Shown piece by piece: positions 199-37,081 of a stretch of DNA of 64,000 nt. Origin of the DNA: Monocercomonoides exilis PA203. Taxonomy: Eukaryota > Protista > Preaxostyla. The notes beneath the pieces are model-generated. The model saw only the letters and a list, made by a program, of their open reading frames with translations, had not been told where the DNA came from and ran no database searches. Position numbers and translations under genes: made by a program. The stretch spans positions 1,302,001-1,366,000 of the forward strand of contig LSRY02000007.1 in NCBI GenBank assembly GCA_001643675.2, read 5' to 3'. Each line of letters begins with the position of its first letter. Within the stretch, counting starts at the first letter, position 1.

Positions 199-357
199 GA
201 AAAAAGATTTTTCTATTTTGCATCACATCATTTTTATCAATTCAAAAACCGTTTTCATTAAATGCCAAAAAGTTTTTAAATAATTAACCATAATTAATAT
301 TATATTTCTAATTGAAGCTGCTCTATTGTCCATTTGTATTTTATACATAAAATAATC

Positions 358-6000: not shown

Positions 6001-6296
6001 TTAAATTTATATTTTTTAATTTTTTTTGTTTTTTTTTCTATCTCTTTTTTATAAATAACATATTGCATTCATATCTTATTTATTTATTTATTTGTTTATT
6101 TTGAATATTGATTCTATTTTTTCTGTTTTTTTTTACTTTTATTTGCATTCTCACTCCTTTTTTTATAATGAAAAATTTGGTACTCTTTCACAATATGCTT
6201 CAAATACCTATTTTACTCACTTCCCCTTCCCAACACAAGATTTCATGGCTTCCAGTCAGATATACTCCACCCAGATGCTTCTATCTCCTCTTTTAG
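5993..6296 (+). other. Predicted phase-1 spliceosomal intron joining the two dynein-like ORFs (alternative donor 5984, alternative acceptor 6239)
   Basis: Donors GTATTT (5993) and GTATGC (5984) are both phase 1 in the upstream frame. Acceptors ...CTCCTCTTTTAG (ends 6296) and ...TACTCAC-TTCCCCTTCCCAACACAAG (ends 6239) are both phase 1 in the downstream frame. The intervening DNA is T/AT-rich, and domain motifs continue across the gap. Confidence 0.6.
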
Positions 6297-9200: not shown

Positions 9201-12026
9201 CACACAATTACATCCATTCTCTTCGGTCTTCGAAGAAAGTGCCATCTGTTTGGGTGTTTCTGTCTGATTCTCAGCCGCTAATTGCACAGACGTTCATCAC
9301 TGCTACGTATGTTTCAGAGCCAGACAATCTGACAGCGTGCATAACACACCGCTTGTCACTCATCGACTTCATATTCAACCAAAAACCAGAGTTTGTGTTC
9401 GATGCAATCATCCGCATTGTCGATGGGCTGGGGCTGAACTTGGATCTTCCGACGTTTGCTTTGCCTTCGCGGTACGTTCGCTTCGGGCACACAATGCTGT
9501 ACCCAAGCAGCGAATCTGTCTCATCGAGTGATGGCCAGTTGCTTTCACAGTGGACACTCCACTACACAAACAATTCGTCACGCAACACATTTCGAAATCT
9601 GAGGCTTGAATTGTCTCTGATGGATGATGTTGAGCTGAACGATGTTTCCAAAGACTTTAAAGATGAATTAACCAGCATACCTTCGTTGAATGTGAAGCAA
9701 ACAAAGTCATCCAAACCTAATCGGTATTTCGAGTCAACATCTCCGTTTCCATCTCTCTCTTGTGGGAATGCTATTGCCTTCACTCAAACAAACTCAAAGA
9801 GAAGCTCAAGAATGACTCTGCCTGAAAGGAAATCGACAATGCCTATTGCTCCAAAATCAAGCTTTTACGCAGTCACACTGGGAATCACGCTTCCCAGCAA
9901 GGATTGCGTGATGCCAGTGACGGTGCTGCCTGAAGATTCAATGGACGATCCTGAGCCATACAACTTGTGTGCGTTGTATCCTGTCATTCCACCAGATGAC
10001 ATTTCACCCACAAAGCTCTTTCAACCTGACCCTGAGCCTTATCGCTGCCCGATATGTGGGTCATATTTTGTGTCTGTTGTAACACTGTTCAATCACATAA
10101 ACGTAAATGGTCCGCACTATCAGCCTTCTCAGATCCAACGGTCTCTGTATGTGACACTGCTGAACTATGTCACGAGATCATTGGAGAGGCTAGCTGTGTG
10201 GGAGAGAGCGCTTGAACTGGTAGCAAAACACTCGGCAAAGTCTTATGAAAACCAAAGTAATGCTTTTATGTTTGATGTTCTCACATCAGCTTCTTCGCCT
10301 TTGTCCTCATCATCTGCTCAGATTGCTGGCTCTGCCTCACAAATGGCATCTTCCTCTTCAGCGGCTTATTATCGTTCACAGCCTTATTCATTTGCATATT
10401 CTGATGCACAAACATCTGATATTGTTCAGCAAGATCTGTCATCTGACAAACATTACGGGCGCTTTCTGTCTCGTGCTGTGATTGCGCCTCCACCTCCGCA
10501 GCTTGTTCAAATGCTTGCTGCTTCCTTTTCTCCATTCAAAGTGCACCATTCAATTGTTTTATCCTCATTGAACACAATTCTTCCATTTGCACTCTCACAA
10601 ATAGGCAAATGGATTGATACCCTGTGCACTATCTTGGATCAGATCTCTCATGCATACCTATTCCCACCAATGGATTTGCTGACAAGAGTGAAAGAAGGGC
10701 TGACATCTCAGCTGAAGAGCATTTCTCGAATGCCTCAAAAATCGTCTGGAACAGTGACAGAGTCCACAACGCCATTCACATCTTTGATTCAGAGGGTGTC
10801 TCAACGGAAAGGAGTATCTTTTTCTTTGGCTCTCTCAACTTACCGCACGTTATCTCTGACTGCAAAGACGGGAATTGATCTCTCTGCATTCACCACATCC
10901 TACCTGCAGCAGACGAAAATGTCAACATCCATGAGCGCCAATGCACTTTTATCATCAATCGACTCTGTTGATGAGCTGACAAGGCTATCTGACACATTCT
11001 CAAACTACTGCGATGCCCCTGCTGAATTGGATGTGAGTCTGAATGAAGTTAGTGAAGCTGTGTCTGTGCTCCGCACATTCAGTCCGAATCGAGCACAAGG
11101 ATTGCTTCGGCTGTTATTATCGCTGGTTGACCAAGTAGTGTCATTTGACCAGCTCTCTGCAGACTACTTCAGCTCAGCCGACACGAAGAAGAAGCAGCTT
11201 GCACTGCGTGCGAGGATTGCGAAGGAAAGAGTGTCGATGAGTTCTTCGATTCTTGTTGCACATTCCAAGGCGATGAGGAAGTCGTATGTGCAAAGTGTGG
11301 ACTCTTCACTTCTCTCTTTGGAGATGAAGGCAGAGAACGTGGCGTTGGTTATGTCGCATTTCAAAGAAGTGACTGCATGCATAGCTGATCTCAACCACGA
11401 TGAGCTGCTTTTGAAGCTGCCTCTGTCAGAATTCCCAGCAGTGGAGAAAGAAATGCAGAAGATGAACTATAACTCGCTTTTGTACTCGACATTCTTCAAC
11501 TTCCGCAACTGGAAGACGAAGCTGATGAGCCAGCCGTTTACTAACGAGAACACAACAGCTGCGCTTCAAAGATTGGACTATTTCACACACAAACTGAAGG
11601 ATATTGAGACTATTCGTATTTCAGTGCCATCGAAGAAGATAATGAAAATGAACAAGTTCCAGAAGCTTCTGATATCTGAGATCGACAATCTGAAGGAGCC
11701 ACTGCATCATGTGGCAAAGATCTCACAGAAATCATTCAGAAAGCGCCATTGGGAAAAATTGGCTGAAATCACACAGAACAGAGCAATACTGACAGACATG
11801 GTTGAACTGCAGAACATAAGCCAGATTCAGGACGAGGTGAGGAAGAAGTCGAATTTCCTTGTGATGATGCAGAAGGAGCAAAGATTAAGAAGGAAAGAAG
11901 TATCAGCTTATAACCAAGGAGCTGTTTTGAGTTCAGCATCATCTGCATCTACTGGGGCACAGTCTGCTGTTTCGAATCCGATTTCTTTGGCTACAAATGC
12001 TTTCTTCCATAATTCAATTTCCACTC

Positions 12027-12081
<55 letters not shown>

Positions 12082-15000
12082 GTCGTCATCATCATCATCA
12101 TCATCTTCTTCTTCCTCCGCCTCATCATCATCGTCCTCATCTTCCTCTTCTTCAGGCTCATTCCATTCTTCACTATCTGCACACGACAGAACACTCACCT
12201 CGATGCTAACAACTAGCGACACAGGACTTCTTCTGGGTGAGTATTACCACACGCCCACGCTCGGCACCCTCATCAACGCTCAATTGCAGAGATATGATGA
12301 ACAATTACTAACACTGATTACAACTGCACTGGGAGAGGCAAAAATTGAAGAAGAGGTTATCAGAATTGAGAAGATGTGGGATGAAGAAATAAACATCTCA
12401 TTTCTGGATGGGAATGGAAACGCACTCACAGAGCAAGATCTGAATTCTCAATATTCGCGATATTTGCACAGGAGACAGCAGAAAGAATACGAACAGCAGC
12501 CTTTGAATGTGATTATGGCTGATTTTGATTTCCCAGACAGAAATGAAAGCGAGTCTATGGGGATGGAAGATGAAGGAGAAGACGAAGAGTCACCACTGCA
12601 CCCGATGAATTACATCGCCAGTGAAGCTTCTTGCAACAACGCCATTACTTCAGCCAACAACACAATGTCCACACTGTCTTCATTGGTATATTCTGAGCAC
12701 ATTGATCCATTTGCCTCCAACATTCTGTTCATCTCTGACACGATCAGCATCATCACGCCTCTCATCTCCACATTCATGGCTGCTCAGCGGATGTGGTTGA
12801 TTCTGCGTGATTTGTTCAAGTCAGACGATGTGGGAGCGAATCTGAAACCAGAAGCAAGACTGTTTGCGAAAGTGCGCGATGATTGGCACACGATGCTGGA
12901 CAAGATGATTTCCAATCCAATTGTCATCCATTCATTCTCTCCAGACTCGTTCATTGCTCATGTACTCCCGTCAATCAACAAGCAGCTCACTGAATGCAAA
13001 GAGCTCATAAGACCGTTCATCTTGAGGAAGCAGACAGCGTTCCCTCGCTTGTTCCTGCTGCCTGAGGACGACATCATCAAGATTATCTCAATGAAGACAC
13101 CAGAGACGCTTGGCGGAACCATCTGCCATGTGTTTCCCAACATCACCAAGCTTCACATTGTGTCTGCAGAGAGCGTGCTGCATCACAGAGACAACGAGAA
13201 CCCGAAGCAGTGGAGATTTGTTCCCGAGGAATTGGAGCTGTCTAACAAGCTGTTTGATTCAGAACTTGAAGAAAAACAGGAAGAGGAAAACGAAGCATCC
13301 ATTATGGACGATGAGATTTCGTTGCATTCTGCTTCGCCTTATGCTGAGTCATTGCATCATTCATTCAAATTTCGTCATTCATTTATCTCGCCAACAAGCC
13401 CCAGAGGAAATAACAAAATAACCCGTATTTATTCAAGACGCTCTCGATCTCAGCTGAAGAACAAGTATCGTTCACGGCGAAGAATGCATTCCCACCACTC
13501 AAACGCTTCCAACGAGAAAAGTATCTATCACAATCTCCAGTCAACCAACAACCTGTCCATTGACCAGATGTCTGAACAGTCGCGATCTGATCTCGTTTCT
13601 GGATTGTCGTCGCATGTTCAGGACGAGAGCACCGTTTCAGTCACAGACACGTCGCTTCTGCAGCAGCTGGGCTTGATTCACGACAGCAGCGCCGCTAGCA
13701 AGAGAAGCCACAAAGGAACACACAGCCGGCGGTCACACTCAGCATCTCACAGAAGAGCTTCAACAGCGAAGCTGAAGAGACGCTCGAAATACGATGCCTT
13801 TGAAGGGTTTGGCAATCTGGCAACACCGTTTGATGCCAACCTCACATGCTCTCATTCGCATATTCCACGTGTGGTGAACACTTCGGCTGATGGACACAGA
13901 CCACAATCGCCTTCTCCGCTTGTTTCAGTGCCGTCTGCGAAGTTCCCCTCGGACATTGTATTTAACTCGTCGCACAAGCGGATGAAGTCATCTCCATCAA
14001 AGCGAAGCAGCTTATCGTTTCACACTGCAAAATCTTCCAGACAGCAGCTGGAGATGCTTTCAGGTCAATCCACTGAGTTTGAGCTGTCTATTTCACGTGA
14101 CACAGACTCCGATGGCCTTCTTGGAGTACGGCACAAAGGATCGCGCTTTGACTGGAGTGCAGATAGTGAAGAGTCTGCCACAGCGACGGAGACGACACTG
14201 ACGTCAACCGAATCGCACGTTGAGAGCATGTCGCTCTCTGACGACCAGGCTTCGACGATCAAAGTGGACTCTGCTCTCATCCGTTCGGGCGAGTTTGTGC
14301 GCTCGCCGCACCACTGCCAGTCTTCGATGTCCTCCACCTCCTCCACATCGTCCAGCTACACGACACAGAGCTTCTTCAAAAGCGGGGATTACACCACAAC
14401 TTCCACAGAGGAGGATGTGACTGCCACTGAAACAGACTCTGAGCGGACGAGGAATGACAACAGCAACACCACTCATTCGAGTGTGGATTCATCCACATCA
14501 GTCACACGCCACCTGGTGCGTGTGTCGAGGAGGCTGGCTGCTGCAAACTATGCCAAAAGGAGGCGACAGTTCAGAGGTTCTGTTCACACTCGCACACGGA
14601 CAAGGAAAGCGGTGTTCAGACAGATGACGGATGTTGTCGGGGCTATCGGCATTTTGGGTGAAGATTTGGGATTTCAGCATCACATTGAGTTTATCCAAGG
14701 GCAGGATATTATTCCGTTCCTGATGAGCATCGAGAATTCGATCAAGCAATCGCTTTCTTTGCAATTGACTGATGCTGTTTTGCGGCTTCCTCTCTTCACT
14801 TTCCACAAGTGCTCCATCGTTCGCTTCAACACAAAAGATGTGCAACATTCCGATTTGATGAACATGCGAGATGAAGAGAAAGATGCCTTTTCAGTTTCAA
14901 AGGACGAAGCAGCCATACAGACAGTCACTGGGAAAATAGCAGACTCTGATTTTGACTCATTCTCAGACTCCGACACCAGCAGCACGCTGGGCTCGATGGA

Positions 15001-18000
15001 CGAAGGCTCCGCAGGCTCGTTCTTGTCGAAGAGAGGACCTATGCACACAGGGTATATGCGCAGGAGCAGGTTGACAAGTCCGTTTGGCATGCAGTCAGAC
15101 GAGAAAATATCACAGTTTACGAAAGGAAGCTCACCATTCCATGATTCGACTGTTCTATCTAACGAGACGCTTGCAGACATCCACATCTCTGGCAACCAAA
15201 AGGGCAGCCAAATAAACCCACAAGCCGCTGCTTCATCCACTGCTGGCGAGAAACGGCAACGTCCTTATCAAACCAGCAACATCGTCTCTCAGCTGGCTGT
15301 TCTGCACAACCGCCCTCTTTTCAAGCAGAAGCATCTGAGACAGTTTCCCAGATGCCAACTGTTCATTCGCTCGACTCTATGCCAAGCACTTTATCTGGCA
15401 ATCATCTCTCACAGAACATACAGAATCAAGCGGATAATCATCAATCTTTACAAACTGGCCGTGAAGTGGCAGAGCGACAGGGAGTATTCGTTTTTGGCAT
15501 CTTTCACTGATTCTTCATCGTCTGCTGTCAGCTCCTCGGCCTCGTCTTCTGTAGTTGGAGCATCATCCACACCCCCTTCATCAACATCTGCTTCAACAGC
15601 CTCACCAGCAACTTCAACCACAACACATCTTTCAGTCTCTGCTTCATCTGCTTCTGCAGCATCGTCGTCACTCACTTTCTCCTCTTCAACATCACTCCCG
15701 CCTCCAACTGCTTCATCAGCTGCCTCTTCTTCAACGTCTGGTACCAATACAAGATATCCGTATCAAACATCCTCAGAGCGAGTCTCATCTGCAGCAACAG
15801 CAACAACAACAACACTTCCACATCAGCCTTCTTCTTCTCTCTCGTCCTCTGGCCAAACAACATCTCCAAGTGGAACTTCATCTGAACAGCGCTCAAAAGA
15901 CCAGTCTCCCTTCTCATCCGCTATCAACTTCTTCAAACAACCTGAGGTTGAGGAGCAAATCAACCATCTGAAGGAAATACGCACAGAAGGCACAGTTCTC
16001 ATCAAAACACTCCAGTCGAGTCTTTCTTCGCGGATGACGTCGCTTATTAGATTGAAAACGGAGAATGCCATCTTGGCATATCTGTATTCTTTAAGCATGC
16101 TGAATTTCCTAGATTTGGTGAACACATACCCCAACAGAGTGTTGATGTTTCTGACACAGTCGAATCATCTGGCGTATGTTCCTCATTTCTACTTCCCTGC
16201 CGGCATTGAAACGACACGAGCAATCAAGCAGCTGTATCCACACATCATTGAGCCTGGTGATTTCCCTGAAGATTCTGAATTCATGGCTTCTTCTGCAGAT
16301 CATGCAGCAGCTCAAGACATTTCTATAAAAGATAAATACCCATCTTCACACACTCCAACTGGAGTTCAGATCATTTTTGGATCAACTTCCATTCCGTTTG
16401 GATATGCATACCTGGGACTCACTATCTCTACTCTCTCAAGTTCCCAACTTGTTTTTCCCTTTGCGCCTTCAGTGAATACCAAGCAGTTCTCCATTAAAGC
16501 TATTGCTTCGCCTCGCTTGATAGGCCGTCCGCAGACAAATCTCCTGTCTAACATCGCATCAGCATTTCCTCATTCAATGCTTGTTAACAACGAGGATGAA
16601 CTGTGCCAATTGCAGGCTGAGACAGAAAAAGTGTCTCAACTTCCGATTTCCGAATCAGAAGCAGGAACATATTCGCTACTTGAAGGAGTTTCGCCATTTT
16701 CGATGATGGATTTAATAAAAGAATTGTCTGTGTTGTGTGGTCGCGACGTATTTTCGTTCGCTGCCACTTCTGAATGCACTCCTATTTCACCAATTTTGCC
16801 TTTCATCAGAGGAGTTATTGGGTCCGGTGTGTGGGGTGTGATCGAGAACGTGCTAGAGCTTTCTCCTGATTCGCTTCAAATCTTGGGCATTTTGACAAAC
16901 AAAGTTATTGAGACATCGAGGCAGAACCTGTGGAGATGCCATCTTACTGAAAATACAACTTCTGCACTTGTTCCTGGCTACTCATTCTTTTGCACATCAA
17001 CATGTCATTCAGCAGAATACGAGCTTCCGGATCACTTCCGCAAATGCTTCCGCCCAGTGCAAGTGCAGCTACCTGATCGTTTCCACTCCCTTTTCCTCAA
17101 CCTGATGATCAGCGGATACCAGAACGCTTATGTCATTGCAAAGAGATGCATATCTTTCTGCGAAACATTTGCCAAGACATCTCGACAGAGCTACGACACT
17201 ATTGATGCGGTGCTGAACAAGATTGGGATTTTGGCACCAATTTTCATTAATGTTGCAGTCAAGCAATACTTCAAACCAGCTGCTGAAGATGCATCTGCAG
17301 GAGCAAAACTGCTGGAATCTCCTCTTTTGAAGTGCATGAACGATGAGGATTATGACGAAGACGACACACGATATTTGAAAGACTACGGCTTCTATGGATT
17401 AAGCAGCACCATGTCAACTGAACAAACAATTGTGCCAGAACCAGAATATTCCACTGATTCATCTGAGCAATTGCAAGATAAACAGTCAAGTTTTCTTCCT
17501 CAGATTTCACTGATGAAGTATGCTTTACGCAAAGAAAAGATTCAGTTTCTAATCGAGTGCACAGCAGTGTGCTTGATCCTTTGCCAACACTTGGGCGCAA
17601 TTCTCAATGATTGTAATTCAACTTTCTTTACGACACTGTTACGAGCTACATTTCCAGAAGTTGTTGATGGAATTATCCTTCAGTCACATCTTCCTTATTC
17701 TATTTATGGAAAGCCATCTGCCCAGAAGAATGTGATTGCAGGTGCATCTACAGAGTCCCGAATGAAAGCATTCCTCTATCGATACTTCCATCTTCCTATC
17801 TCCGTTTCCACATCTTCTTCGTACAGTGGAATGAGATACACCACAAATGTGTTTTCAACCATCAAGAGGATTATAACCAGAAATAATGGACTGGAGAACA
17901 TTGGATCCAAAAGCGAGTGGGAGATCTTTCGGTGGTGCGTTGCTGCCTGCACACCAAAGTCTTTAGACAGCTCAAACACTTATGAACAGGGCGGCAACGA

Positions 18001-21000
18001 AAACAATCAAAAATTGCTTTCTGACGACAGAATAAAAGAGAAAAGCTTGGAGTCGTCCAATGGCGATGGACCTCTTGCTGGTGCAGACAGGACAAATGCA
18101 GAAACATCCACACAAGAAACAATGGAGCGTTCATTGGCAGATAGCGTTTCTTCATACTCCACACATTCCAATTCGCTGTCTGGGCTGATGAAGCCCTGTG
18201 ACATGTCTTCAATAACATATGAGATTAGCCACATTGATGACACAGGCAAGGAATATGCAAAGACTTTTCCTCGAAGGGATCAAACAGTTTCGATGCTGGT
18301 TCCGTTCCGCGATGAGTCAGAAGAAGAGGCAAGCAATCTCGAAGCGTTGAATGAAGCAATTGGACCTATCTACCAGCCTGCAGGCCATTTCCCCATTCCG
18401 AATTTTGATCAATCAACCTGCAAAGAGGCACAAGAAGAGTTCATCACAAGTATCATTAGCAAGGTTTTTCAACTGAAGGAGCAACTAACTCCAGTCGGAC
18501 AGCAGTTTTCTGAATCTATTTCAGCTGCCACAATGTCTCGCCCTGTGATTCTGCTTGGGCCTTGCATGAGTGGCAAGTCTATGATTGTGTCTGCCCTTGC
18601 AAAAGCTCAATCAGCTGCTGGCATACACACAGATATTATAAACTATGCTCCTTCTTCTATGAACTTTGCCCAAATGTTTGGCTCCTTTGGATCAGCATCA
18701 AAGAGCATTACTGGAGAAGGCTCTGATTTTTATTTGATCGCACACGACAGGCTGCAAAAGAACAATGCTCCGCTTTTATTTTCTGAGGCTCCAGCTCAAA
18801 GTGACGATGAAGATGCCAATTTCCACTCGTTGAAAGGAAGCAACTCTAAACAGGAAGGAGACTTCAGCAGGGCTCATGCCAATGCCAAATCAAATCTGAT
18901 GATTAAGGAGCCTATTGAAGAGACTGCAATGTCGGCGTTTGCTGGGCTCCTGCGGAACAAGCAGAACACGTGGAGTGATGGAGCATTCACCTCGCTGCTT
19001 AATGATCTCATGCACGAAAAGTCAAGCCAGCTTGCAATGGCTGATCCTCTTCACACAAAGGATTCAGCAACTGCTAACAAAACAGCAGACAACCAAGGAG
19101 GAGTAGCAGCCGCTTCTGCCTCAAATGCACACTCAGAAGTGTTTCTTGTACTGGATCTTCATCCATCTACGCTCCAAACATCAAGATATCATATAACCTC
19201 TGCCTCCTCCATATTTAGCAGTGGGACAGGAGACAGCCCAGCATCAACAGCACTGAGATCATCGACTTCTTCTGCTAATTCACTTGTCAAGTGGATGTAC
19301 TATCTGACAATGATGATGCGACCAGAAACGAGAATGAACACAATTGTGACTGCCGAGCTTATAGAAAAGACGAAAGAGATTGAGCGGATCAACAAAGTCG
19401 GATCGGATGTCCACTTGGTGGATCATTCAGATGCTTCGCAACTGAATTCACTTCCAGAAATAATGGAAGTGCTGACTGGGCAGAGCTTGAAGGATGTGTG
19501 GTACACCATCTTCAGAGGAAAGAAAGCAGAGTGGAAGAAGCACAAGAAAGCCAAGCAGCAGACAGAATGCTCATACAACCTTGCCGAAGCGCTTGCCAGT
19601 GAAGAGTTCTCTCTTCCGCCCAGAGTCTATTGGGAGACTCTTGTTGAGACAGAGCTGATTTCACGTGAAAAGCGGCAGAGACTGAAGAAAACGAAGTCGA
19701 GGCAAGGAAAGAAGGACATTGCGACTGGGGAGTGGATAGAACACTCCAGCGAGTTTGGTGAAGTTGAGGACGATGAAGACGATTTTATCCAATGGATTGC
19801 TGAGCAGATCTCTCATTGTGCTGGAAATCAAATGGATCAGATGCTGTATCCCCCGACCATCGAGCAAATGGAAAGGTCGCTGGATGCGCTGGCTGAATGC
19901 TCGTATGCCACCATGCTACCAAACTTGTCTAGGATTCGTTTTCCAGACAATGTCAAAGTGATTATCGAGACAGACACACTGGAAAACATCCCATCGTGCT
20001 TTATTTCTCAGTGCTCAATCATCAACGTCCCCTTCTCGATGATCGCATCCATCCACCGAATGTCTCTTTGCCATGAGATTTCTCCGTTTGATCGTTCAGT
20101 TAATCTCCTGTTCCTCTACACAGAAAAGAAGCTGCAAACAAACTATCTTGTCCTCCACCCTCAGTTCTCACAGATGGTCACAAACGACAGAACGCTTGCT
20201 TTGATCTTCTTGTATATCCGCAAAGCAGCTCAGATACTGACCTATTGGATGACAGAGGCTGGGGCGTTTATTCGGTCTTTTTTCAATCGAAAGCACCTGA
20301 CGAAGACAACACCACAAAGTGAGGAACACAAATGGCCTGATGCCACATCTGATTTCGAGTCATTGAATTCACCTTCAACATGTTATTCCTCATCTATCTT
20401 TTCATCTTCATCTTCATCTTCTTCCACTTCCACATCCACAATTGGTACATTTGCTTCTGATTCTGCGGCATCATCGACGACAACTTCTTCAGTTGCAATT
20501 GGCATGCCATCAATGACAGTTTCAACATCATTGAGCTCACATCCAAGTTGTTCACTTCATTCAGCTGCTTCAACAACATCTGCTTCAGCATCATCTTCCT
20601 CATCTTCATCAACAACCACGTCCACAGCTGCAACTTCTTCATTATCATCACAATATTCGTATATGCAAGATGACAAGTTGTGTGAAACCACAGAATCTCT
20701 TCTCGGAAAGGGATATCTCCAAAATCCCATCCATGCAAAAACGATGATGATCAACTACTTCGCGAATGTGATGAGCTTATACACAGCTCATCTTAACACT
20801 CTACTTCCATCTTTTGTTGCAACCATATCAGATGACTCACACCTTTTCTCATCCACCGCCACATCTTCATCTGTTTCGTCGACTGCATCACCATCGAATA
20901 TTTCATCTGTTACATCTTCTTCTTCATTCTTTTCGACTTCTTCGGAAGCAACGCTGCCTTCTCAGTTCACCCCGAACAAAACTGATTCATCTTCACCAAA

Positions 21001-24000
21001 AACGGACTCCAGATCTCTCTCTCCAGATACACCGTCTGCTTCATCTTCAGCTTTTGCATCATCATCATCTTCTTCTTCTTCGTCTTCTGGATCTCACCGA
21101 ATTCCAGCAACATCGCCTCAGCTTCCACTGGGAGAGATGACGAAGATCTACAACAACGCAGCATATTCTGTGTTTTGGGGCATGGGCGGTTTCCTCCTTT
21201 CAGACAACACGTTCCACTTGGAGTTTTCCAAGTTCATCTGCTCACTCACTCCATGTCCACCCGCATCTTCTCATTTGCACAAGCCGATCAAACAGACAGA
21301 CAATCCAGCTGTGACTGAGCTTAGCCAGCGGGATCTGCTTCATCTGGAACGCTTTTTTGGCGACAGTCACGAGGATCTCGTGGAGGAGACACTGATGCAG
21401 TACTATGTGGACTTGTCGTCTGGAAAATGGCAGCATATTTCGAAACTGGCGCTGATGAATGCAGAGGAGAAGGAGAAAATGAATGTGCCGTTGCAGAATG
21501 TGAGCAGCAGATCGACACTTCCATTGAGAGGAAGAGGAAAATTCCATCCAGTGATAACAACAGGGTCAAATGTGACAATAGATTCTGGACGCTTCTCAAA
21601 TGTACGCACAAAGGGAGTGACACAACCAGTGCCTTCTGTTTCACGAATGCGCTTTAACACAGCAGCTGCTCCGCAGATGATGGACGACGGGAGAAGCGAG
21701 CTGTCGACACAGGGAAATGAAGATGAAGAAGTTGCATCGATTTCATGGAGTCGCTATCAAATGTACGGAAACCACTCTTATTATTCACATTCAGATACAA
21801 AAACTGTTGAGCAGCAGACATCCAGTTCTCAGCAATATGGACACAGAAGCCTGCTTTCTGAGTCAAATCCGAAATGCGGACCGTTTGAGCATCCTGAACT
21901 CAAAGAAGATATGCTCTTAAACCCTATTCTTCCTGTGCTTCATGTTATGACTCTGTTCTTCCTGGGAGGAAAAGCAGTGATGCTGGCATATGAAGATCTT
22001 CTAACTGTGAAGAAGCTGGTGGATGCTGTTCCACAACTTGCGTTTTCAACAACATTGGGAAGAGAAGGCATGAAGAAAAAGACGAATGTGTTCCAATGTC
22101 CGATCTATCCACATACCCCGCCATTTGTGATGTGGAGAATGATCAACAGAGTCAACTCGCTTCTGGATGAAACACAGCGCTCGCTCAATGCCTATTCAGA
22201 TATGCCCAGCACGTTCAACACACGCAGCTACAACATTTCTTCTGGATCAAAGAACTCGAAAGAGTCAAAGTCTCATCATTCGATGTCTTCCTCCACGTCA
22301 AGCAATGAGCAGTGGCTTGCAACGAAACGGCTGATTCATCCTGGACATGAGCTGGCAAGTGGTACAACTTTGCCTCCTTCAGCTGTTTCTGAGCAGCACG
22401 TCTCTGCGTCTCAGACCCTTTCCTCGCATAATTCTGTTCCGATACTCTTGGCACCTGGAAACCAGAAAGAAGGATCTTTCATCACTCAAAAGGATGCCAT
22501 TGGAGAGTTGCAGACTGCTTCAACAACAATCTTCTTTGACCTTCACACTCCTGTTTTACTTCAGACTCTTGAAGTCCTCAGAACATTTGCTGAAAGAAGA
22601 CAATATTTGACAATTACAAACCCGCCCACAATGAAGAAGACAAAGTCAGGAGTCAATCTTGCTGTCTTACTAACATTGCCAATGATCCATTCGCTTCCCA
22701 TTCGATTTTCACGACAATTTGCCAACATCGCAGTGAGAAAGCTGTCGATGAACGAGCGTCTGTCTCAGCTTACTCAGCTGTGCAACAAGAGGATGGCTGT
22801 TTATTGCAGCACAGCTCATTCTCCACGACCTTCAATCACATCCATCCCGAAGGTTTCGAGCGATCAGCAAGGGATGGATATGGCCACGCTGATCGCAGAC
22901 CCATCGGACATGATGAACAGTGGAGGCGATCAAGACAGCTCTTGCCAGGGACATATTCACCTCTTTAAGAATGAGCTGTTTCCGCTTATTTCTCACTCAC
23001 CTCTTTCTCCGTTTTCTGAGACATCGACTTTATCGCACACGACAAGCGAGATAGAAGTCAACAATTCGATGCAGATTACAACTCCAAAGGCTGATCAGTC
23101 TCAAACTGGATTCTTTCCGACTGTATCGTCAAGCTCTGGAGGATCAAACGAGTTTACGCTTTATTACGATGAAGAGGAAAAAGAAGATAGCGAGCCTTCA
23201 GTTTCATATGATGAATTCAACAATCCATCCACATCTGTATTGTATTCATTTGATGATAATGATGTATTAGACACTCTTTCAGATCCTTCTGAGTCAAGCG
23301 AAGATGGCTATGAAGAAGAGTACGAAGATGAGTACGAAATTCTTGATGGCTCAACATCAATTTCAGCTAAGGATCTTCCTTCCACAATTATTCCATCGTT
23401 GGCTATTCAGCGTATTCCAATCATCACTCTTGCATTCTACCGTCTTTTAGCGTTTTCGCCACAGTCAGATACATTAACTGTGAACCAGCTGAAACTTAAG
23501 AGGAAGCTTTCACAGTTGATGCCTTGTTTTGACACAATACCAATCACATACAATTCAGCGCTGGAGATTATCTTCCAATTTTCGAAGCGAGTTAATGAAG
23601 ATCCAACAATTATCAACAGCACAACCACAATCTCTATTACATGGATAAAGACGTGTCGTGATGTGTTTGCCGATCAGCTTATAACTTGTGAGCTTGCTGC
23701 ATTTGATCAAATAGCTTCTTTCTTTGGATCATATCTTCTAAACGACAATGAAATTGACTTTAACAAATTGGGTGAGTTCATATTGGGATTGTCTTTGGAA
23801 GAGCTTAATGCAAAAGCAGACGAACTTAGAAACGAGGATCTTGACTCAAAACACTTTCATCTGTATAAAGTGATTGTCGAAGATGAAGATTCCAATCTAT
23901 CACGATTCGTCAATGAGTCTAACTTCATCCACTATCCATTCCAGCTAACAGACCAAATGGGAGCGAAAATCATGAAAATTGCTGAGAAAGTGAAGGACTT

Positions 24001-27000
24001 CAACGTATGCTTGCTGGCTCAGCCAGACACGATTTCCACTTCTTTCATCTCTGCAGTCGCAGCTGTGTCGTATTGCACACACATTCATATCAAGATCAAC
24101 ACAACATACCCTTCATTTGTGATGTCTCTTCGCGAGATGATCCAGTTTGCGCTGTTCAACCGATGCCAAACACTCGTCAGCATCTTTGCAAGCGATACAA
24201 CACACCTCACAGAGGCAAGCTCGCTTCACGAGGCCATCCAGCAGAGCTCAAAGGAGTATTCGTTCTTCAACAACGACGACAAATTCGGTAGCGATGCTTC
24301 TTCTGGCAAGCAAAGCGAACCTTATCGGTACAACTCAATAAGACCAGAGACGAGGAAAGGGTGCGAACAGACTCTATTCACAGAGTATCACATTGGCGGC
24401 CACTCACCCATTCTGCAGAATTCAGAGCATGCTCATGCAGATGGGCTAAATGCCTTTGATGTGAGCACATTTCTTCAGTCAGTGATTCAATCACACATGG
24501 CTTTGATGTATCTATTTTCTGAGGAAGAAGTGCAGGCTATGCTGGTTGAAGCGCGGTCAGTGGGTTATTCTGAAGCTGTGGATGATGAATGGATTGTTAA
24601 CCGAATGAAATCGATGATCCGCTTTATTTTTGTGGTTGACTATCTCGGTGCCACTTTCATTCGCAAGCATTCTGACGAAGTGGTGGATGTGTGGAACCAA
24701 AATGTGTATGAGCCATTCTTGCAGAAGAAGATGGATGTGATCAACATTGTACCAAAGGCTGCTGAGGAGCTTGCGAAGCAGCCAGATGTGACCAATGCTC
24801 GCATCTTATCATCTGCTCTGAAACACTCAAACTCGATTCTCAACTTCAGCACTCCCATTCCACCTGACGTGGTTGAGATGCTTATTTCGCTGGGAAATGA
24901 CGAAAAGGCAACAAGCCTGAGAATGATAACTGATGCGACTGATTCAACGTCAACTGCTTCTTCGCAAACAGACAGCAATGCTAATTATTCACAGTCACAG
25001 CCACATTCTCATTTTGCTTCAAGTTCAACTTCAAGCTCGACACAACAAAATTCTCGATCGTCGCGCCATCAACAGCCGCCTTCTGCGAATCTGTATCCTC
25101 CATTCTCCAGTTCTCCCATCCGCGTCTTTCCTGGCTTTTCTGTGTTTTCGTGGATTCCTCAATACTGCGTGTTCGAGACCATAGAAAACGACTCATTTTC
25201 AACACTGCACAATATATGCAGGCAAAACATCATGCCTTCTGTGTTCTCTCAGTCCATCCTTCGCAAGCAGTTGAGAGATCCATATGCCTCAAGTGATGCA
25301 AATCCACTTTTGACATCTGCAAATAAGTCATCTGTGCAAGCATTATCATCGGCTGCATCTTCAGTTCTCTCTTCATCTTCGTCATCTTCTTCATCGCTGC
25401 CTTTGAGCGTACCGAGAAGTGTCGAGCCACAAACCTCTGAATCTTCTCTTCATGCTGCAAATCCTACTGCACATGACTCTAAAAAGAGCAAGCATACTTC
25501 TCCTATTTCTAAACAATACTTCTTTTTGGATGATGATTTGACTGTTCTTGACACAAACTTAGAGTTGATCAAAGGAAACAGCAATGTCACATCTACTTCC
25601 ATTACAACTCAAACATCATCAAGTGCAATTAACATTGATACTGAAGAAGATTCTGCAGTAGCAATGAATTCAACAGGAAATACATCATTGACACAACAGA
25701 ACGGGAAACAGAAACTTCCAGTGGTTCCTCATTTATCTTTTCGAGATATCATTCAACCATCATCGACTTCTGCATCTGCATCTGCATCTGCATCTGCTTC
25801 TGCTTCTTTTTCCGCAGTAGTTGATTCCTCTGCTTCAAATACTTCTCCTTTGCGAACTTTACATTCTCAATCCCAGCAAACAGCCTCATCACTGAATAGG
25901 CAAGATATCATTGCAAATAAAAAACAAGCCAAAGTGCATCGATTCCGCGATGCGCTTCGCTTGGTTGAAGAACAGCCTTTAATCAATGTATCATTGAAAT
26001 CGTCTTCAACTGATTCATCCTCCTCTGTCCATACACACTCTACTCTCTCCACACTCCAGCAATCCAGTGCTCATCCTGCTCCACTGCCAACGCGCCCACC
26101 CAGTCCGTTGCATCACTTTGTGACATTTCTGGTGCCGTTCTCTCCGCGTTGCAAGCCTCGTGCGAGAAGACGGAACTCGGTGTACACGCGGGGGCTGATA
26201 CACTCTGCCCAGCACAGCATGGACAATCTCAGGCCTTCTCCTTTGCTCAGACGGAGGTCAACACTCGAATCTATGAAGGATCTGAGGGTGTCAACTGCTG
26301 TTGATGCAGATGGAGCTGCATTGACGAAGGTGAACAATACAGCTGCTGTATCTGCTTCAGCATCTGCACAAGCAGACCACACATCTACCAGAAAACTTCC
26401 AATTGTACATCCGCCAGTGATTGTCACACAACCACTTATAACTGCACCACATTCTCTGCTTCCTCCTTATTCAATGGCTTCGGGCTACTCCAAACAGCAC
26501 ACGCACAAATTCCTTCCAAAAACACCTGGTCCTCAAAGAAAGATGATTTCAACTGAGAATACAAAAGGGAAAGCTCTTCAGTCACAAATGTCTCCACAGC
26601 CAGCTCCAATCTCTCCACTGCCGCAGCAAATGCAATCGCACCAGCCATCTTCAGAGCCTGTCGCACGCTCTTCTCCGCTGACGGTGCATCCACAATCTCG
26701 TCAAGTGTCATCTGAGCAGCGGAATTCAACATCTCAATCGCAACTGCGCCATGTTGGCTTTTCGCTACAAAGAATACAATCTTTGCGTTCGCTTGAAAAA
26801 CACAAGTACAACATTCATCTATCAGCCAGACTGAAGAGAGAAATCAAGAAGATTCTTTCATCTGTCTCAGCGACTAATTACCAGAAGCAAAGTCAAGATT
26901 CAGTCAATACTCAAAACACTTTCTCGATTGCAAATACACTCTCTTCATGTGACTCACCAGGGCAGAAGCTGGAGATCATCCAGACTTCCGAGTTCTTCGG

Positions 27001-30000
27001 CCAGCCGACTTCAACAAACGCTCACAGCAATGTGTCTCTGGTGAGAACACGCCCGTCAAAGGCAAGGCAGCTTTCAGAGTCTTCCAAGCATGCCATGCAT
27101 ATGCATCAACTGCGCAGCACAAGCACCCTCAGCAAAATCTATTCATGTCTTGTGAGCATCTTCCTCTGCGTAAGAGAACTGAATCAATCATATTCTCGTT
27201 CAGATATGTCACGTGCCTGGTTCATCTTTCGTGTAGTGAGGATAAGCACTCACATGCACGTGCGTTTTGTGCATAAGTTCTCAGACTTGTATTCAAGTCG
27301 CGTCGAGTCGCTCAAGAAACAGAAGGCGCTGGCAACTGCTGTGGTCAAAAAACTGTCTTTGATAAATGTGACGCTTATGTCTCGCAGGGCATTTGTTTCA
27401 GCAATGGTTGGAGTGTTTTATAAACATGACATTTTGAGAAGGAAGATACAGCCTCTTGTGGAAGATGTGAAATTAAGGCTAGCAAAGATATGCATTTTGA
27501 TGAGGACAGTAAAGCAGCTGACGGAGCAATTGCACGAATTGACTGTTCTATCTGAGAAAGAGCGAAAGGAGTCTGAGGATTTATATTCGAGAGCTCTTCT
27601 TTTGCGGCAGCAGAATGCCGAACGTGAAGAACTGTGCAGGCACAAAAAGATTGTCTCAGCGAATGACCTGCTTTGGGCGAAGCGGCTGATGAACCCTCCT
27701 CGCCTTATCAGGTTGGTATTTGATATGATTTTGATTGTGATGAAGAAAAAAGTGAATCCAGTTGAACTGAGGCCATATCAAGTGAGGAGATGCTTGTCAC
27801 CACAAGTGCAGACATTTGATGAGAAATTTAAAAAGCCATCTCCGCTTTCTCTTTCAGCAACAGTCAACGGAATTCCAACTGTGAAAGAGAAGTCGCCAGT
27901 GAACTTGTCACGAATGCTGTCTCCTTCAGCATCTTCTTCATCTCCACGCCATCAGACAACTTTGTCCTCTTCACTTCGAGGGAGCACTCTGAGCTCAGCT
28001 GCTCAAAAGAAAATTGTCTCATCACCTCGAACTCAAAGCCCATTGACTCAGAAGAATCTGTCAAAAACGATCGGAGATCCGTTGCAGTTGTCTCTAAGCA
28101 ATACACCTGCATCAAGAAATACATTTGCATCCACTAAATTAAGAACACAGCTTTCCTCTGACACTCAATTAGCATTGTCTTCTTCAAAGGCCATTAGCAG
28201 AAATCAGACTTCGTTGGGTCTTGTTGATTCTTTCGAAAATGCGAGGGCTGTTCTTTCGCTGCCAACACTTGCGACCGACGTGAAAGTTCTGTCAGGAAAT
28301 TACATTACAGACGAAGAGATTGAGCTTTTAATGCCTTATTTTGAGATGCCGGTCATCAACCGAAAGGACATCAACTTGAACTGTGAGAAGCTTTTGCCTG
28401 TTTTTGACTCAATCGCATCGTTCAAGTGGCTCAAAGATCATCCACAGGAAGAGATACCACCAACGGAATCATTCTGCTTCAGGAAGTCTAAGTTGAAGGA
28501 GATAATCTCCCAACTCGAAGAAAACATGACCGAGATCGAAAACGAGCGCGTGTTTATGACTGACTCGGTGAACAAGCTCATTGTGCTCCTCAACATGAAT
28601 GTCACAACACCAACTGAAGTCGAATGTGCAGTGAGCGACTCTTCATCTGATCACATTAGCACCGAAAGATCAGACAACTCATCTATTTCCTCATTTAGCG
28701 CTTCCACATCATCAGGTTCTGCCAATTTAGCTGCTCCTCTTTCAGCAAACACTTCTTCGTATACAAACGATTCATCTTCATACGAACACCAAACATCAAG
28801 CTGTTTGGATGACATTGATGACGACCACGAAGCCTCCACTGGCTCATCGTTGTCAACCTGGCATTCATCTTCACCATCATCTTCTTCTTCGTTCATGCCT
28901 TCTTCTGCCTCTGCTGCTTCTTCGCCATCACAAGTTGCACCTTCTTCCGTCTCCTCTCTGTCAACATCGTTGTCTCAATCATCAGCCTCTTCCTCTTCAC
29001 AAAATATGGCCAATGCACTTCACACAACAAATCTCGATGCTTTCAATCAAAAATCAGTACATCAGCCAGCTCGTCGTGTCTCCGTTGCATTGTCGCAGTA
29101 TCATCAAGGAGGCTTTGCTTTTGAGTCGCTTGTGATGTGGCAGCTGGAACTTGCACGCATCGAGAGATGTGTCGAGTGTGCGCTTGGCGACTCAATTTTA
29201 GCGGCTGCTTTTGCTGTGTTTCATGCAGCCATCTCGCCTGATGAGTGGCACAGAGCAGTTCTTCTCTGGCGAAGGTTGCTGAATGTGGCGGGCATTTCAT
29301 ATTCTGTCGATCCCAGAGAGGATAAAACCGACCACGAAGATTATCCAGGCATTTATATAAAGTCTCAGCACGTTGCTAACAGCTCCAAAGATGATCCACT
29401 GGGCACAGATCATCTGAAAGAACACGGAAGGGCTGCATGCTCATCCGAGCAAGCACAAGGAAATGCCAATAATACTCAGAAATACGTGGCACCAGATGCA
29501 GGAGTGGAGAATCCAATTTACGAGAACGGATTGATCACTTACTGCAAAGAAGGCAGCTCCGAAGTCGGGCTGATGTACAACCCTGACCAGATCATGCGGC
29601 TTGCCCAGCCGATTTCTCCTTTGATGTTCCCGATATTCACCACACTTGGCGGTCTGCAAATCCTTCCGTCCAATTTGGCTTTCGGACTGTCACCAGACGA
29701 GCAGTCGCTGATGTGCTCAACAATATGGCACAACTGCGAGCCGTCTGTGCCAATCATCTTCTATGACCCATTCCACATCGCACAGATGCATGTGATGAGG
29801 AAAGAGCGCGAACGCACACCGATTATCGTCACTCATATTACTCATTCGCTATTCTTCTTACATGCCATCCGTGCTGCTGTATGCGGGTTCCCATTGATTG
29901 TCGAGTATGTGTCTGTTAGAAAAGAGATGAAGCCTGAAAGAACTTATGATATTATGCAGTTTTTGGATACGCTCGCAACATGCTCGTCGTTCTCGCCCGT

Positions 30001-33000
30001 CCAGTCAATGCTGTTTTGTGGACAGGAATTGAAAATTAAGCCAGGATTTCGATTGTATGTGTTTGTGAACGAGATATTTGCGTTGCTGCCTTATGACGAG
30101 CCATTCCTGGCGCTTTCATCTTCGCAAATGTACAAGTTGAGCATTATTATTAACTGGTCGCCTATTCTTCTTAACACACAGTTCCACTTCCAGATGCTTC
30201 ATGCAGTGGCAGCACCAATGATTATGCCTGATGTCTATGAGCATCAGCTTCAACAAGTATCAATTGTCAAGCGAAATATTGATGAAAGCGAGTTAATTAC
30301 AAAAGAATGGTTGGACTTTGTATTACAGTTGCGCTCTCAAGTGGCAAACCAGTTTTTCACAGTTGGAACAGAATTCTTCAATAAGATTCAATCTGATGAC
30401 GCTGCGGTCAAAGAAGCACTTCAGCAATACGAAGAAGACAAAGAAATAATGCTTTCTCTTTCACCTCTCATCTGCTTGATAAGAGACACTTTCTCTGTAA
30501 CTGTTGCATTCAACACACCGATCATCTTTTCAACTCTGCAAGTATCGTCTCAATACGATCAGATGAGTGTGCCTATCGACAACCATCACAGCCCATCAAT
30601 TGTGGAGTTCTTTTCTCTGATGATGCATTCGCTCAGATATGCTCTTCAGCTGATGGAGAAGCAGAAGATTGCGCAGACTGTTGCTGGAATCAGTGTGTCT
30701 TCATCGTTTGCGGATGGAAGTGGAATGAGCGATGAAAGTGAATGTGATGAAAGCGATGATAGCGCAAGTATATTGGCTGATGAGTGGAGCGATGAAGAGG
30801 AGTGGAAGATTGAAATAGACACAAAACTATCAGAAAAGAAAACGAGATCAAAGGAGATGTCATCTGCAAACACTGCTGAACTTCCACAGAATTCAGAGCA
30901 AGCAAATGAACAATGCATATGGAAGACTGATATCTTTGGAGTGCCTGAAGAGAATAATGAATATATATCATCTCCTCTGCAGCTCATTCATTATCGATTA
31001 AAGCCCTTCTCTTACATGATCTCGGTAGCTTCGCAGAATTTATTAAATATTCGTTCATCTTCTGCTCAAAACAACCAACGTTCACCAATCTCAGAACAGC
31101 AGCAAACAGGCAGTACAAATCAAGGCAAAACGTTGCAACCAACTGATAGCAGCAACTGTGAAAGAACAGTGTCTCCGAATATCTACACGAGACAGTCGCC
31201 GTTTTCTGGGCGAAAGCATACACCTCCGTTGTCAAGGACTGGGTCATTCTCGCCATCTGTGATATCAAACAGCTCTCAGAGTGGATCAAAGTATTTTGTG
31301 TCTCCGCATCAAATAGAAGCTATTATGGAGACTGTTGCAAGCGTCTTTCTCGATCGGATAATTCATTCTTTAGATTTTTCTCCAGATGATGAGCTGTGTA
31401 ATTCTCCAGATCAGAACGGACGTGTTGTGTTTTTGTTTTTGCTATCGATGTGTCTTAATCAGAGAGCTCAGCTAATGCAGCTGGAGCAGAAGGGATTGCT
31501 GCAACAAGTCGGAATCTTTTCTGTTCCACAAACTCAGCAAGCAAATAAGCAAGTTCATTCAGATGCTGCAAATCAATCAGAAACACAAAAATTGTATGAA
31601 AGTAAAGTGAGATGGTTTGATGTGCCGTCTTGGATCGATGTTATTCGCAAGCCCAACTTGGACACAATGTATGACAGGAAACTTGGACTGATTATATCCT
31701 CACTTCATCACGATTACAAGTTATGTGTGGATGTTCTTCTGAACTGTTATGATTCTTCTTCTGTTGCAGCCAGCGATTCATCTCCACTTTCATTTGCATT
31801 GTCAAAGTCATCAACTTCTGCTATTGATGCGCCTGCAAACGTTGAATTCAGTTCAGAATTGAATTTTGGCAAAATGAGCTCATATGGGAAGAGTCGTACA
31901 AGCAACTTCCCTCCTCCTCAACTTTCTCTCGCAAAGCCGCAATTGTCGGCTCCTCCATCCAGAAAATCGCTTTCTCCTTCGCTTTCTTCAAAGCCATTGA
32001 GTCAGCGACGTTCGCTTGGATCTTTGTCTCCTCTTCCTCCAACTTCACCAAATATAACTTCACAAGCCCCACCATCCCCTGCTTCACTGGGGAATGTGTC
32101 TTTGGTTCAATCAAAGCAACCAGCACAGAAGAATTCGTTGCAGGATTTGGTCTCTATCATAAATTCAATGCCAAATACGAATGCTCCTGTTGCATTGGTT
32201 GATGCTTCGTCTTCATCAAAAGTGAATGCAAGACAGCTAATGCCTTCGCTTACTTCGTCGGCTTCTTTGTCTTCGCTGGAGAATCCTCGTATTTCAAACA
32301 GAGAAAAGAATATTCAAGGATCTTCCACAGTTCAGGATAGTGAGCAAGATGTGTTCAGTCTTATTCCTCCAACACTTAGAGATTCTCTTAAGCGGTCGCT
32401 TATGTTGTTTTCTTTCATTGAAAAATACGATAGACAGAGAATTGTTGATGATTGGGGCTCCTTTACAGACTCGATAAACGCTCGCAACCTGACACCTGAC
32501 TGGCAGCTTCAATTGACACCAAGCAGTTTGCTTAGCAACACGACAAAGGCAACAAGCTGCGTGAAGCTGATCATGGACTCTTTGATGACACACACCGCTG
32601 AATGGATAAAATGGGGATCTTCTTCGTGTGTGGAGCTGCTGTCGCTTCCAGACAACTTGGATGCCAAGATCTCACCATTGACTCGACTAGTCATCCTCCA
32701 CAATTTGGCTCCACAGCGCACCGCATTTACGATTATGTACTATGCCTTGTCTACCCTGGGCATGTTCCTTCCGTCGTGCATGCCTGTCGAGCAGCAAGTC
32801 ATCAGGCAGGTTAAATCGTCTCCTCCAAACTTCCCCATCTGCCTCAATTCTCTTCGGGGTGTGTATCAGAGCGACATGTACCTTCGCAGCATCAAGCAGA
32901 CCCTTCGAGCAACAGAGAAAAGCGAATACCCTTCACTGTTGATTCATCATCTTGGTTATATTCCTTCGTATCTTCCATGCTTGATTGTGGAGAAATTTGC

Positions 33001-36000: not shown

Positions 36001-37081
36001 GTGGGACTTTGTGAATAGAAAGATTATAAAATCAAACTGCGTTGGCTCTTTACCAAGCACCGCTACTCAGTTTCCCATTGTCAGATTGTCTGTTATTTAT
36101 CCGCGTTATATGGAGAACCACAAAGTCGTTCGTGCATTTGGACTTTCTTCTCCATCTGCGTTACAAACATCATCAAGCACAATAAGCAGGTCTGCTTCAT
36201 CCTCTGTTTCAGCTGCTTATTCACCTCTGCAGCAGCAAGTAGTTTCTTCCAATTTGACTTATTCAGTGCAAAATAATGCACGTGTTGCTTCATCTTCCTT
36301 GAATCCATCGTCATTTGTCAGTGAAGTACCTTCAACTTTTAAAGCCTCTTCGATACAGTACCCTGCTTCACAGTGCTTTATTGACGAGCCAAATATTCTT
36401 CCTATCACAACAAAGTACCCACCGTTTAATATACTCCACACGCGCTTTGTTCAGCTGCTCGCACACAATGGAGCCACTTATGCCAAATCGAAGTCAAAGA
36501 TTGTGCAGCAGCGCATGCACTCAAACTTACCTGAAAAGAATCGCTCTGCAGACAAGGCAAATGCGAGCAAGATGCAGACAAGTGGAACAAGTAGTTATGT
36601 ATTTACAAAGCCTTCTGCTTGCTCTGCATCGCAAAACTCGACAATATCGTCCTTTGACTGCTCACACATTAATCCCTATGCAGATGCACCGTTTGTTTCC
36701 TCTGACACTGCTCTTTCAGGAATAATTGTTCCATTTCAGTCACTTACAAAAAATGAATTATCTGATTATTCATCATCATCATCATCATCATCATCTTCTT
36801 CTTCTTCTTCTTCTACGTTGCCTGCTTCAGCATTATCATCTTCAAGAGGATATTCTCCTCTTCGTAATGTTCCGCATCGAGCACCTACGAAGAATTCTGA
36901 TAAAGAATGTCCTGCTCCGTTTCTTTATCAATCATCCATTTTCTCTTCATCAGCGAAAGACACTGCAGAGGTCACAGTTGTGGTGCTGCATGATGATTTT
37001 GCTAATTGGGAAAGATTGGGCTGCTATTTATTTTTTGATTTTGATAGAAACTCGTTGGAAACAAGTTGCATTCTCAAATAG
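6245..37081 (+). CDS. Dynein heavy chain-like protein, main exon (rest of tail, linker, AAA1-6, stalk/MTBD, C-terminal domain); highly diverged and expanded
   Basis: Stop-free ORF of more than 10,000 codons with dynein heavy chain motifs in canonical order. DHC_N1: VNISVQQNAFLAEFLKLIKFGF (7337), GFNWS (7610). DHC_N2: RKRHWEKL (11738), EAKIEEEVIRIEKMW, AQRMWLILRDLF..LKPEARLF, FPRLFLL (13040). AAA1: YAYLG (16403), GSGVWG, ELPDHFRKCFRPV..PD (17021). AAA2: GPCMSGKS (18557), WSDG. Stalk: NPPRLIRLVFDMILI (27692), LGDSILAAAF. AAA5: YDP, FRLYV. AAA6/C-terminus: LLFSLCYSFAILHLRSRF, GISMAGFAWD, WERLGCYLF (37007). Confidence 0.9.
10040..10117 (+). other. C2H2 zinc-finger-like motif in the dynein-like tail
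   Basis: YRCPICGSYFVSVVTLFNHINVNGPH matches Y-x-C-x2-C-x3-F-x5-L-x2-H. The second His lies at x6, slightly longer than the usual x3-5. Confidence 0.6.
12029..12153 (+). repeat. Compound microsatellite (TCGTCA)n/(TCA)n/(TCT)n encoding poly-Ser inside the DHC_N2 region
   Basis: Read directly from the sequence. Confidence 0.9.

Follow-up and report, generated by a model that had tools for sequence, protein, structure and literature searches.

What can a dynein heavy chain still do for a cell once its engine has been taken out? The question is raised by a gene in a stretch of 64,000 nucleotides from the oxymonad Monocercomonoides exilis PA203 (assembly GCA_001643675.2, contig LSRY02000007.1, positions 1,302,001 to 1,366,000 of the forward strand; this whole stretch is called the window below, and all coordinates are counted within it). 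In canonical dyneins, hydrolysis at AAA1 drives the swing of the linker, and AAA2 holds a nucleotide structurally, without hydrolyzing it. The window holds an open frame for a giant dynein heavy chain-like protein in which the architecture is kept and the catalytic residues of AAA1 are gone. A first interpretation made from the letters alone (the sequence-only reading) had proposed a non-motile derivative of a heavy chain without an AAA1-driven power stroke, and our analysis bears this out. That the protein is non-motile is well supported; as far as alignments and structural models can tell, it is most likely a fixed, microtubule-bound strut or regulator and not a motor.

The order of domains is that of a complete heavy chain: a linker, AAA1 to AAA4, the more weakly matched AAA5 and AAA6, a stalk with its microtubule-binding domain, and a putative C-terminal domain were located by HMMER, profile and AlphaFold comparisons (Table 1). 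The collinear map was obtained by chunked hhalign against a Pfam-mapped canonical heavy chain of the same genome. In the main frame, Pfam recognizes DHC_N2, AAA_6, Dynein_AAA_lid (weakly) and Dynein_C, the last with 20.5 bits and, hence, below the curated cut-off of 25.7. A phmmer search of solved structures returned 83 matches, and the 60 listed are essentially all axonemal or cytoplasmic dynein heavy chains. The C-terminal 3,340 amino acids (aa) matched no solved structure in phmmer, and the C-terminal half of the protein is recognizable only via profiles and paralogs. From the linker onward, the chain is about 2.7 times as long as a canonical one, the excess consisting of low-complexity inserts rich in Ser, which accounts for 16% of all residues; the nearest paralog can be aligned over only about half of the chain. 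A DHC_N1 tail was not found by Pfam, and hhalign gave probabilities of at most 0.4 before aa 1468. A protein search with the N-terminal region gave no usable match to any protein.

Closer inspection of AAA1 shows how thoroughly its site has been lost. The Pfam AAA_6 match (E = 1e-8) begins at profile position 49, directly past the P-loop, and a MAFFT alignment with six canonical heavy chains of the same genome has an 11-residue gap opposite GPAGTGKTET; the Asn of sensor I and the Arg of sensor II are gone in the same alignment. In the phmmer alignments to solved dyneins, FDEFNRI stands opposite IENVLEL, and ATVSRCG stands opposite CFISQCS. With the P-loop, the Walker B acids, and the sensor residues all missing, AAA1 is unable to bind or hydrolyze ATP. 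Every string quoted in the sequence-only reading does lie in frame where it was reported (GVSPFSMMDL at 16685, aa 3532; ENVLE at 16844), and its view that Walker B, both sensors, and the AAA2 arginine finger are lost agrees with these alignments. For the P-loop, the loss itself stands, but not the residue-by-residue equation of GPAGTGKTET with GVSPFSMMDL: what happened is a deletion of 11 residues, not a substitution. An intact AAA1 motif hidden by an intron, which would have overturned that reading, was looked for; no Walker A is present in any forward frame of 15000-18500, and an in-frame intron concealing the P-loop or a hidden exon rescuing AAA1 is therefore rejected.

At AAA2, GPCMSGKS is the only conserved Walker A of the protein; a second match to the regular expression, at aa 8340, lies in low-complexity sequence. 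The Walker B strand reads VFLVLD followed by Leu, so that the Asp is kept and the catalytic Glu is absent. By these residues, AAA2 is predicted to be equipped for nucleotide binding but not for hydrolysis. As had been claimed, its Walker A and the AAA3 arginine motif that faces it (PIRFSRQF) are intact, and both are in frame and conserved in all (Walker A) or most (arginine motif) of the examined members of the family described below.

AAA3 and AAA4 have lost their P-loops too, a claim made at first by eye and now supported by collinear alignments and an AlphaFold model of aa 5262-6260; neither module has what nucleotide binding requires. In AAA3, the alignment is clear for the Walker B region and for RFxRxF; on the P-loop side it is weak by sequence alone (hhalign E = 0.043), yet collinear. 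In the model, the AAA3 site is built of the strand VMLAY, the two-residue loop ED, and a helix (pLDDT of about 80 to 90), and therefore, there is no phosphate-binding loop. At AAA4, AQPDTISTS stands opposite GVGGSGRQS, with flanks that match without gaps, and the model has the strand VCLLA, the loop QPDTIS, and a helix. All Foldseek matches of this model, down to E = 9e-6, are dynein motor domains.

The microtubule-binding domain is in a very different state. Both its H1 NPP motif (LMNPPRLIRLVFDMILIV) and its helices H3 to H6 can be aligned, and in the AlphaFold model of aa 7150-7560, the core, which has a beta-hairpin flap, reaches pLDDT above 90. Superposition with VIA-align on the binding domain of the outer-arm dynein gamma chain (6l4p_B) covered 136 of 138 residues (Z = 15.1, rmsd 3.2 Å); ten further dynein stalk or binding-domain structures followed with Z of 10 to 12.7, after which the score fell to 4. 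Furthermore, two of the paralogs match the canonical stalk profile at E = 2.2e-39 and 1.3e-37. We can predict with high confidence that the domain folds like the solved dynein domains.

The protein does not stand alone. Besides about 18 heavy chains of canonical type, the same genome encodes more than 10 giant divergent ones, and three giant paralogs (13,776, 10,716, and 11,068 aa) are collinear with it from end to end, with 22-48% identity in blocks. A profile of the AAA1 region of this family, run against 1.84 billion representative proteins, gave 11 matches between E = 5e-56 and 2.5e-19, then a gap to the ordinary dyneins at 8e-11; no animal protein ranked with the family in this search. 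The named matches are eight proteins of Blattamonas nauphoetae and one of Streblomastix strix. A search with the AAA1 region among proteins of 4,900-15,000 aa scored nothing, but the limits of this search on word and protein length deprive that result of any weight. Thirteen members of the family were found: the studied protein, the three M. exilis paralogs, the eight Blattamonas proteins, and the Streblomastix protein. Its best conserved block is the AAA5 region, with 29-30% identity to the paralogs in BLAST and hmmsearch matches in Blattamonas up to E = 9e-89; among solved structures, the family AAA5 profile has a single weak dynein match (E = 0.0024), to DNAH1.

The pattern of losses runs through the whole family. 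All 13 members have exactly one conserved Walker A, and it is always that of AAA2, while the P-loop, Walker B, and sensors of AAA1 are absent from every one. The Asp of the AAA2 Walker B was found in 10 of the 13; the next residue is L, V, T, or M, in no case Glu. The AAA2 arginine finger serving AAA1 is lost in 11 of 12 members, the AAA3 RFxRxF motif is kept in seven of the eight examined, and no member examined has retained the AAA4 P-loop. Because the pattern is common to three genera, the losses predate the split of these genera, and the genes have been maintained since. The sequence-only reading had suggested a change of function instead of random decay, and this view is strengthened by the same losses together with a kept AAA2 P-loop in 13 members, by the open frame, and by the kept microtubule-binding domain. 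A pseudogene is rejected on account of the 10,329 stop-free codons of the main frame; the other five frames of the same stretch have 393 to 602 stops each.

In a tree of the linker, 12 giants form one clan (SH-aLRT support of 100), in which the studied protein is sister to the 13,776-aa paralog (support of 99) and another subgroup unites two M. exilis copies with one Blattamonas copy. The phylogeny that had been called for to find the parent class joins the giants at the end of a long branch, away from all canonical chains sampled, and links them to no particular dynein class. No one-to-one Blattamonas ortholog of the studied copy was found, the identities all being 23-29%. Our literature searches found no description of a family of giant dead dyneins in oxymonads, and the Blattamonas gene models bear automatic dynein names only.

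At least 10 further giant frames (5,634-9,622 codons) with weak DHC_N2 or AAA_6 matches are present in the genome, on contigs 1, 5, 10, 14, 16, 25, 30, 43, 50, 51, and 91. Several of their AAA_6 matches (contigs 14 and 16) begin past the P-loop. These frames were not matched by the family AAA1 profile, and they may be additional dead-dynein lineages. Outside the genome, three heavy chains of normal length from environmental assemblies (P0012, P0025, and P0109) have degenerate AAA1 P-loops and may represent further non-motile lineages beyond the oxymonads.

How does the family compare with known systems? The best solved matches are canonical outer-arm heavy chains (8glv_Cn and 7k5b_A; 6l4p_B for the binding domain). 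They share with the giant protein the domain order, the linker, the AAA1 core past the P-loop, the AAA2 P-loop, and the binding domain with its beta-hairpin flap, but in them AAA1, AAA3, and AAA4 are all functional, a DHC_N1 tail is present, and the length is about 4,500 aa. The RNF213 ring mixes competent and inactive AAA modules and is apparently a scaffold; RNF213 is not known to have a DHC_N2-type linker, stalk, or microtubule-binding domain and is not a dynein heavy chain. Its likeness to the oxymonad protein is one of analogy only, both being giants organized around an AAA ring of the dynein kind. RNF213 has been described as an E3 ligase of giant size whose six-AAA core is dynein-like (PMC7311170).

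The recognition of non-motile dynein heavy chains is very recent, with DNAHX in 2025 and the reevaluation of DNHD1 (PMC11785096, PMC8754002). DNAHX has 5,272 aa and a near-complete Walker A (Thr to Val), holds ATP at AAA1, branches from the animal outer-arm alpha chains, and is reported to be absent from protists (PMC11785096). Like the oxymonad proteins, it has degenerate AAA1 motifs, was judged to be non-motile, is longer than canonical chains, and is interspersed from end to end with disordered inserts, which also occur in the stalk and, ahead of H3, in the microtubule-binding domain. Unlike DNAHX, the oxymonad proteins lack any P-loop in AAA1, are dead in AAA3 and AAA4 as well, reach 10,000-14,000 aa, occur in multiple copies, and have a conserved microtubule-binding fold; they also form a separate clan on the linker tree, which held no named DNAHX sequence. 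DNHD1, an "orphan" or "ghost" heavy chain of animals, was the subject of a long debate over its functionality (PMC8754002, PMC11785096). It, too, is divergent and carries inserts, and its AAA1 lacks catalytic Walker B residues, but it is of normal length, whereas the oxymonad family is multicopy and lineage specific. There is no sign that the oxymonad family derives from DNAHX or DNHD1, from which it is set apart by their descriptions and not by their sequences.

Weighing alignments and models, we consider it rather probable that the window contains a real, maintained gene for a giant heavy chain paralog that serves the microtubule arrays of oxymonads as a passive strut, spacer, or brake. The scaffold, cross-linker, or spacer of the sequence-only reading, possibly in the axostyle, is a candidate role of this kind. 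In our model, AAA2 would keep a nucleotide bound permanently, a structural cofactor by which the dead ring stays assembled, and ring and linker would form a rigid body. The tip of the stalk would bind a microtubule without ATP-driven release, and the long family-specific N-terminal region might attach to a second microtubule or to another structure. A more specific proposal, that the giant dead dyneins are regularly spaced bridges tying microtubules together in the axostyle or preaxostyle, with the ATP of AAA2 as a permanent structural cofactor, is speculative, and we think it rather unlikely to hold in this form.

Several points weigh against a strut, spacer, or brake. The binding domain carries an insert of about 125 residues and CC2 one of about 170 residues, both in the giant protein and in its sister paralog, and these could weaken microtubule binding or break the communication along the stalk. 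Inserts of a comparable kind in DNAHX have been interpreted as disrupting microtubule binding (PMC11785096). Both alignments fed to AlphaFold contained canonical dyneins, which may bias the models toward the canonical fold, and some paralog rows in them were partial. Finally, a second attachment through the N-terminal region is pure conjecture because that region has no detectable similarity to a dynein tail or to anything else outside the family.

The inserts would also fit a protein that does not bridge microtubules at all. A dead chain might pair with an active heavy chain. Sea urchin DNAHX, a non-motile chain with many disordered inserts whose AAA1 is degenerate, heterodimerizes with a second heavy chain (PMC11785096). 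The oxymonad protein could likewise inhibit a partner, template its transport, or anchor it, and the canonical heavy chains of the genome offer possible partners. However, the giant protein shows no homology to the dynein tail, the part by which heavy chains pair, and DNAHX keeps ATP at AAA1, whereas the oxymonad P-loop is deleted. In two paralogs, moreover, conservation with respect to canonical dyneins is highest in the stalk and binding domain, which points to microtubule binding as the retained function. On balance, a DNAHX-like regulatory partner seems improbable, though it is the main rival of the strut. Could the protein still be an ATP-driven machine, with AAA2 or an unrecognized site as its working ATPase? 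Most of the family does keep the AAA2 Walker A, the Walker B Asp, and the neighboring arginine motif, but the residue past the Asp is never Glu, as in the non-hydrolyzing canonical AAA2, the protein has no other conserved Walker A, and AAA1, the driver of linker movement, is gone; such a machine is very unlikely.

The extreme divergence of the sequence, the low-complexity insert that makes up about half of its length, and the fact that the gene is known here from its sequence alone could also suggest a decaying or functionless "ghost" gene of the kind once proposed for DNHD1, open by chance or under weak selection. Yet a stop-free frame of 10,329 codons cannot persist neutrally, the conserved blocks are collinear in the paralogs and in other genera, and motifs such as the AAA2 P-loop are invariant throughout the family. 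Of all explanations considered, we find this one the hardest to believe.

Table 1. Features of the giant dynein heavy chain-like gene in the window (aa, amino acids).
Feature	Position	Strand	aa	Basis or remark
Probable exon 1, family-specific N-terminal region	358..5992	+		~1,878 codons from ATG 358
Putative phase-1 GT..AG intron	5993..6239	+		247 nt, 20% G+C; junction frame check
Main open frame, giant dynein heavy chain-like protein	6092-37081	+		10,329 codons plus stop; first ATG 6245
Linker region	10493..14098	+	~1468-2669	hhalign probability 99.5 and 97.8 to canonical linker
Pfam DHC_N2 (PF08393) match in linker	12623-13180	+		E = 2.2e-35, above cut-off
AAA1 module, catalytically dead	16409..17371	+	3440-3760	Pfam AAA_6, phmmer, MAFFT alignments
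AAA1 P-loop deletion site LEGVSPFS	16679-16702	+		
AAA1 Walker B remnant IENVLE	16841-16858	+		
AAA1 sensor I region	16988-17011	+		
AAA1 sensor II region	17192-17218	+		
AAA2 module with large inserts	18449..21436	+	4120-5115	Alignments; weak Pfam Dynein_AAA_lid match
AAA2 Walker A GPCMSGKS	18557-18580	+		Opposite canonical AAA2 GxxGxGKT in phmmer
AAA2 Walker B strand VFLVLDLHP	19139-19165	+		
Lost AAA2 arginine finger CFISQCS	19997-20017	+		
AAA2 lid	~21161-21436	+		
AAA3 module	21899..23686	+	5270-5865	hhalign, AlphaFold secondary structure, Foldseek
AAA3 P-loop position VMLAYEDLLTVK	21977-22012	+		
AAA3 Walker B remnant	22523-22555	+		
AAA3 retained arginine motif PIRFSRQF	22697-22720	+		
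AAA3 lid	23510-23686	+		
AAA4 module	23924..24691	+	5945-6200	Alignments, AlphaFold
AAA4 P-loop position VCLLAQPDTISTS	24005-24043	+		
AAA4 LLAQPDTISTS	24011-24043	+		
AAA4 Walker B strand region	24170-24202	+		
Stalk	27059..29311	+	6990-7740	Alignment, AlphaFold, VIA-align
Stalk CC1	27059-27691	+		
Microtubule-binding domain	27659-28438	+		
Disordered Ser-rich insert in microtubule-binding domain	27809-28180	+	7240-7363	At beta-hairpin flap tip
Stalk CC2, interrupted by second Ser-rich insert	28463-29311	+		
AAA5 region	29519..30721	+	7810-8210	hhalign probability 68 to canonical AAA5
AAA6 region	32549..33241	+	~8820-9050	Canonical-profile hmmsearch E = 3e-7; hhalign probability 93
C-terminal domain, Dynein_C-like	35342..36037	+	9751-10042	Pfam E = 3.2e-4; hhalign probability 84

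The gene probably begins upstream of the main frame. A stop-free frame of 1,888 codons (334-6000), in a reading frame different from the main one, aligns collinearly with the N-termini of the three giant paralogs, and a Pfam search found no domain in it. A putative intron would join both frames to 12,158 codons from the upstream ATG; thirteen alternative in-frame GT-AG pairs could do so as well, and we infer the two-exon model from the sequence on these grounds. The two exons were searched separately, and the joined model was checked only for the frame at the junction. M. exilis introns have a mean G+C content of 27.6% (PMC8767320). Codon-phased tandem repeats are found at 3209-4979 and 12027-12154, among them a 9-mer at 4394-4517 with 13.8 copies of 99% identity, and the plus strand is C-rich, with a strong negative GC skew at 2000-8000. 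The Ser-rich inserts may have arisen by replication slippage.

Each of the canonical and giant dynein genes of the genome consists of one unbroken frame of 12-41 kb. That the longest genes should lack introns is striking beside the genomic mean of 1.95 introns per 2.7-kb gene (PMC8767320). Two pairs of canonical heavy chain loci have identical Pfam scores (C80:371387 and C80:515284; C65:19692 and C81:35146) and are recent duplicates or assembly duplicates. Downstream in the window, a plus-strand frame of 2,235 codons (37716-44423) has a Pecanex_C match near its C-terminus (E = 3.1e-10), and a minus-strand frame of 4,013 codons (48576-60617) ends at its extreme C-terminus with the C-terminal half of a protein kinase domain (E = 1.8e-7), the sole Pfam match in that frame.

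In sum, the oxymonad family appears to be a further, separate, and most extreme case of a non-motile dynein heavy chain: the main engine is deleted, two regulatory sites are gone, the length is doubled or tripled, and still the AAA2 P-loop is present in every member found. As a natural experiment, it supports the view that the nucleotide at AAA2 has a structural role without which the dynein ring cannot do. If the giant dead dyneins did bridge microtubules in the axostyle, a dynein ring would have been turned into a lattice-building structural protein, and the family would show what stays of a dynein under selection for architecture and not for motility; it might even be the static equivalent of the axostyle bridges that move in other oxymonads. 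For the lineage-specific microtubule structures of oxymonads, a group with few known cytoskeletal components, the giant dead dyneins provide a candidate protein family.

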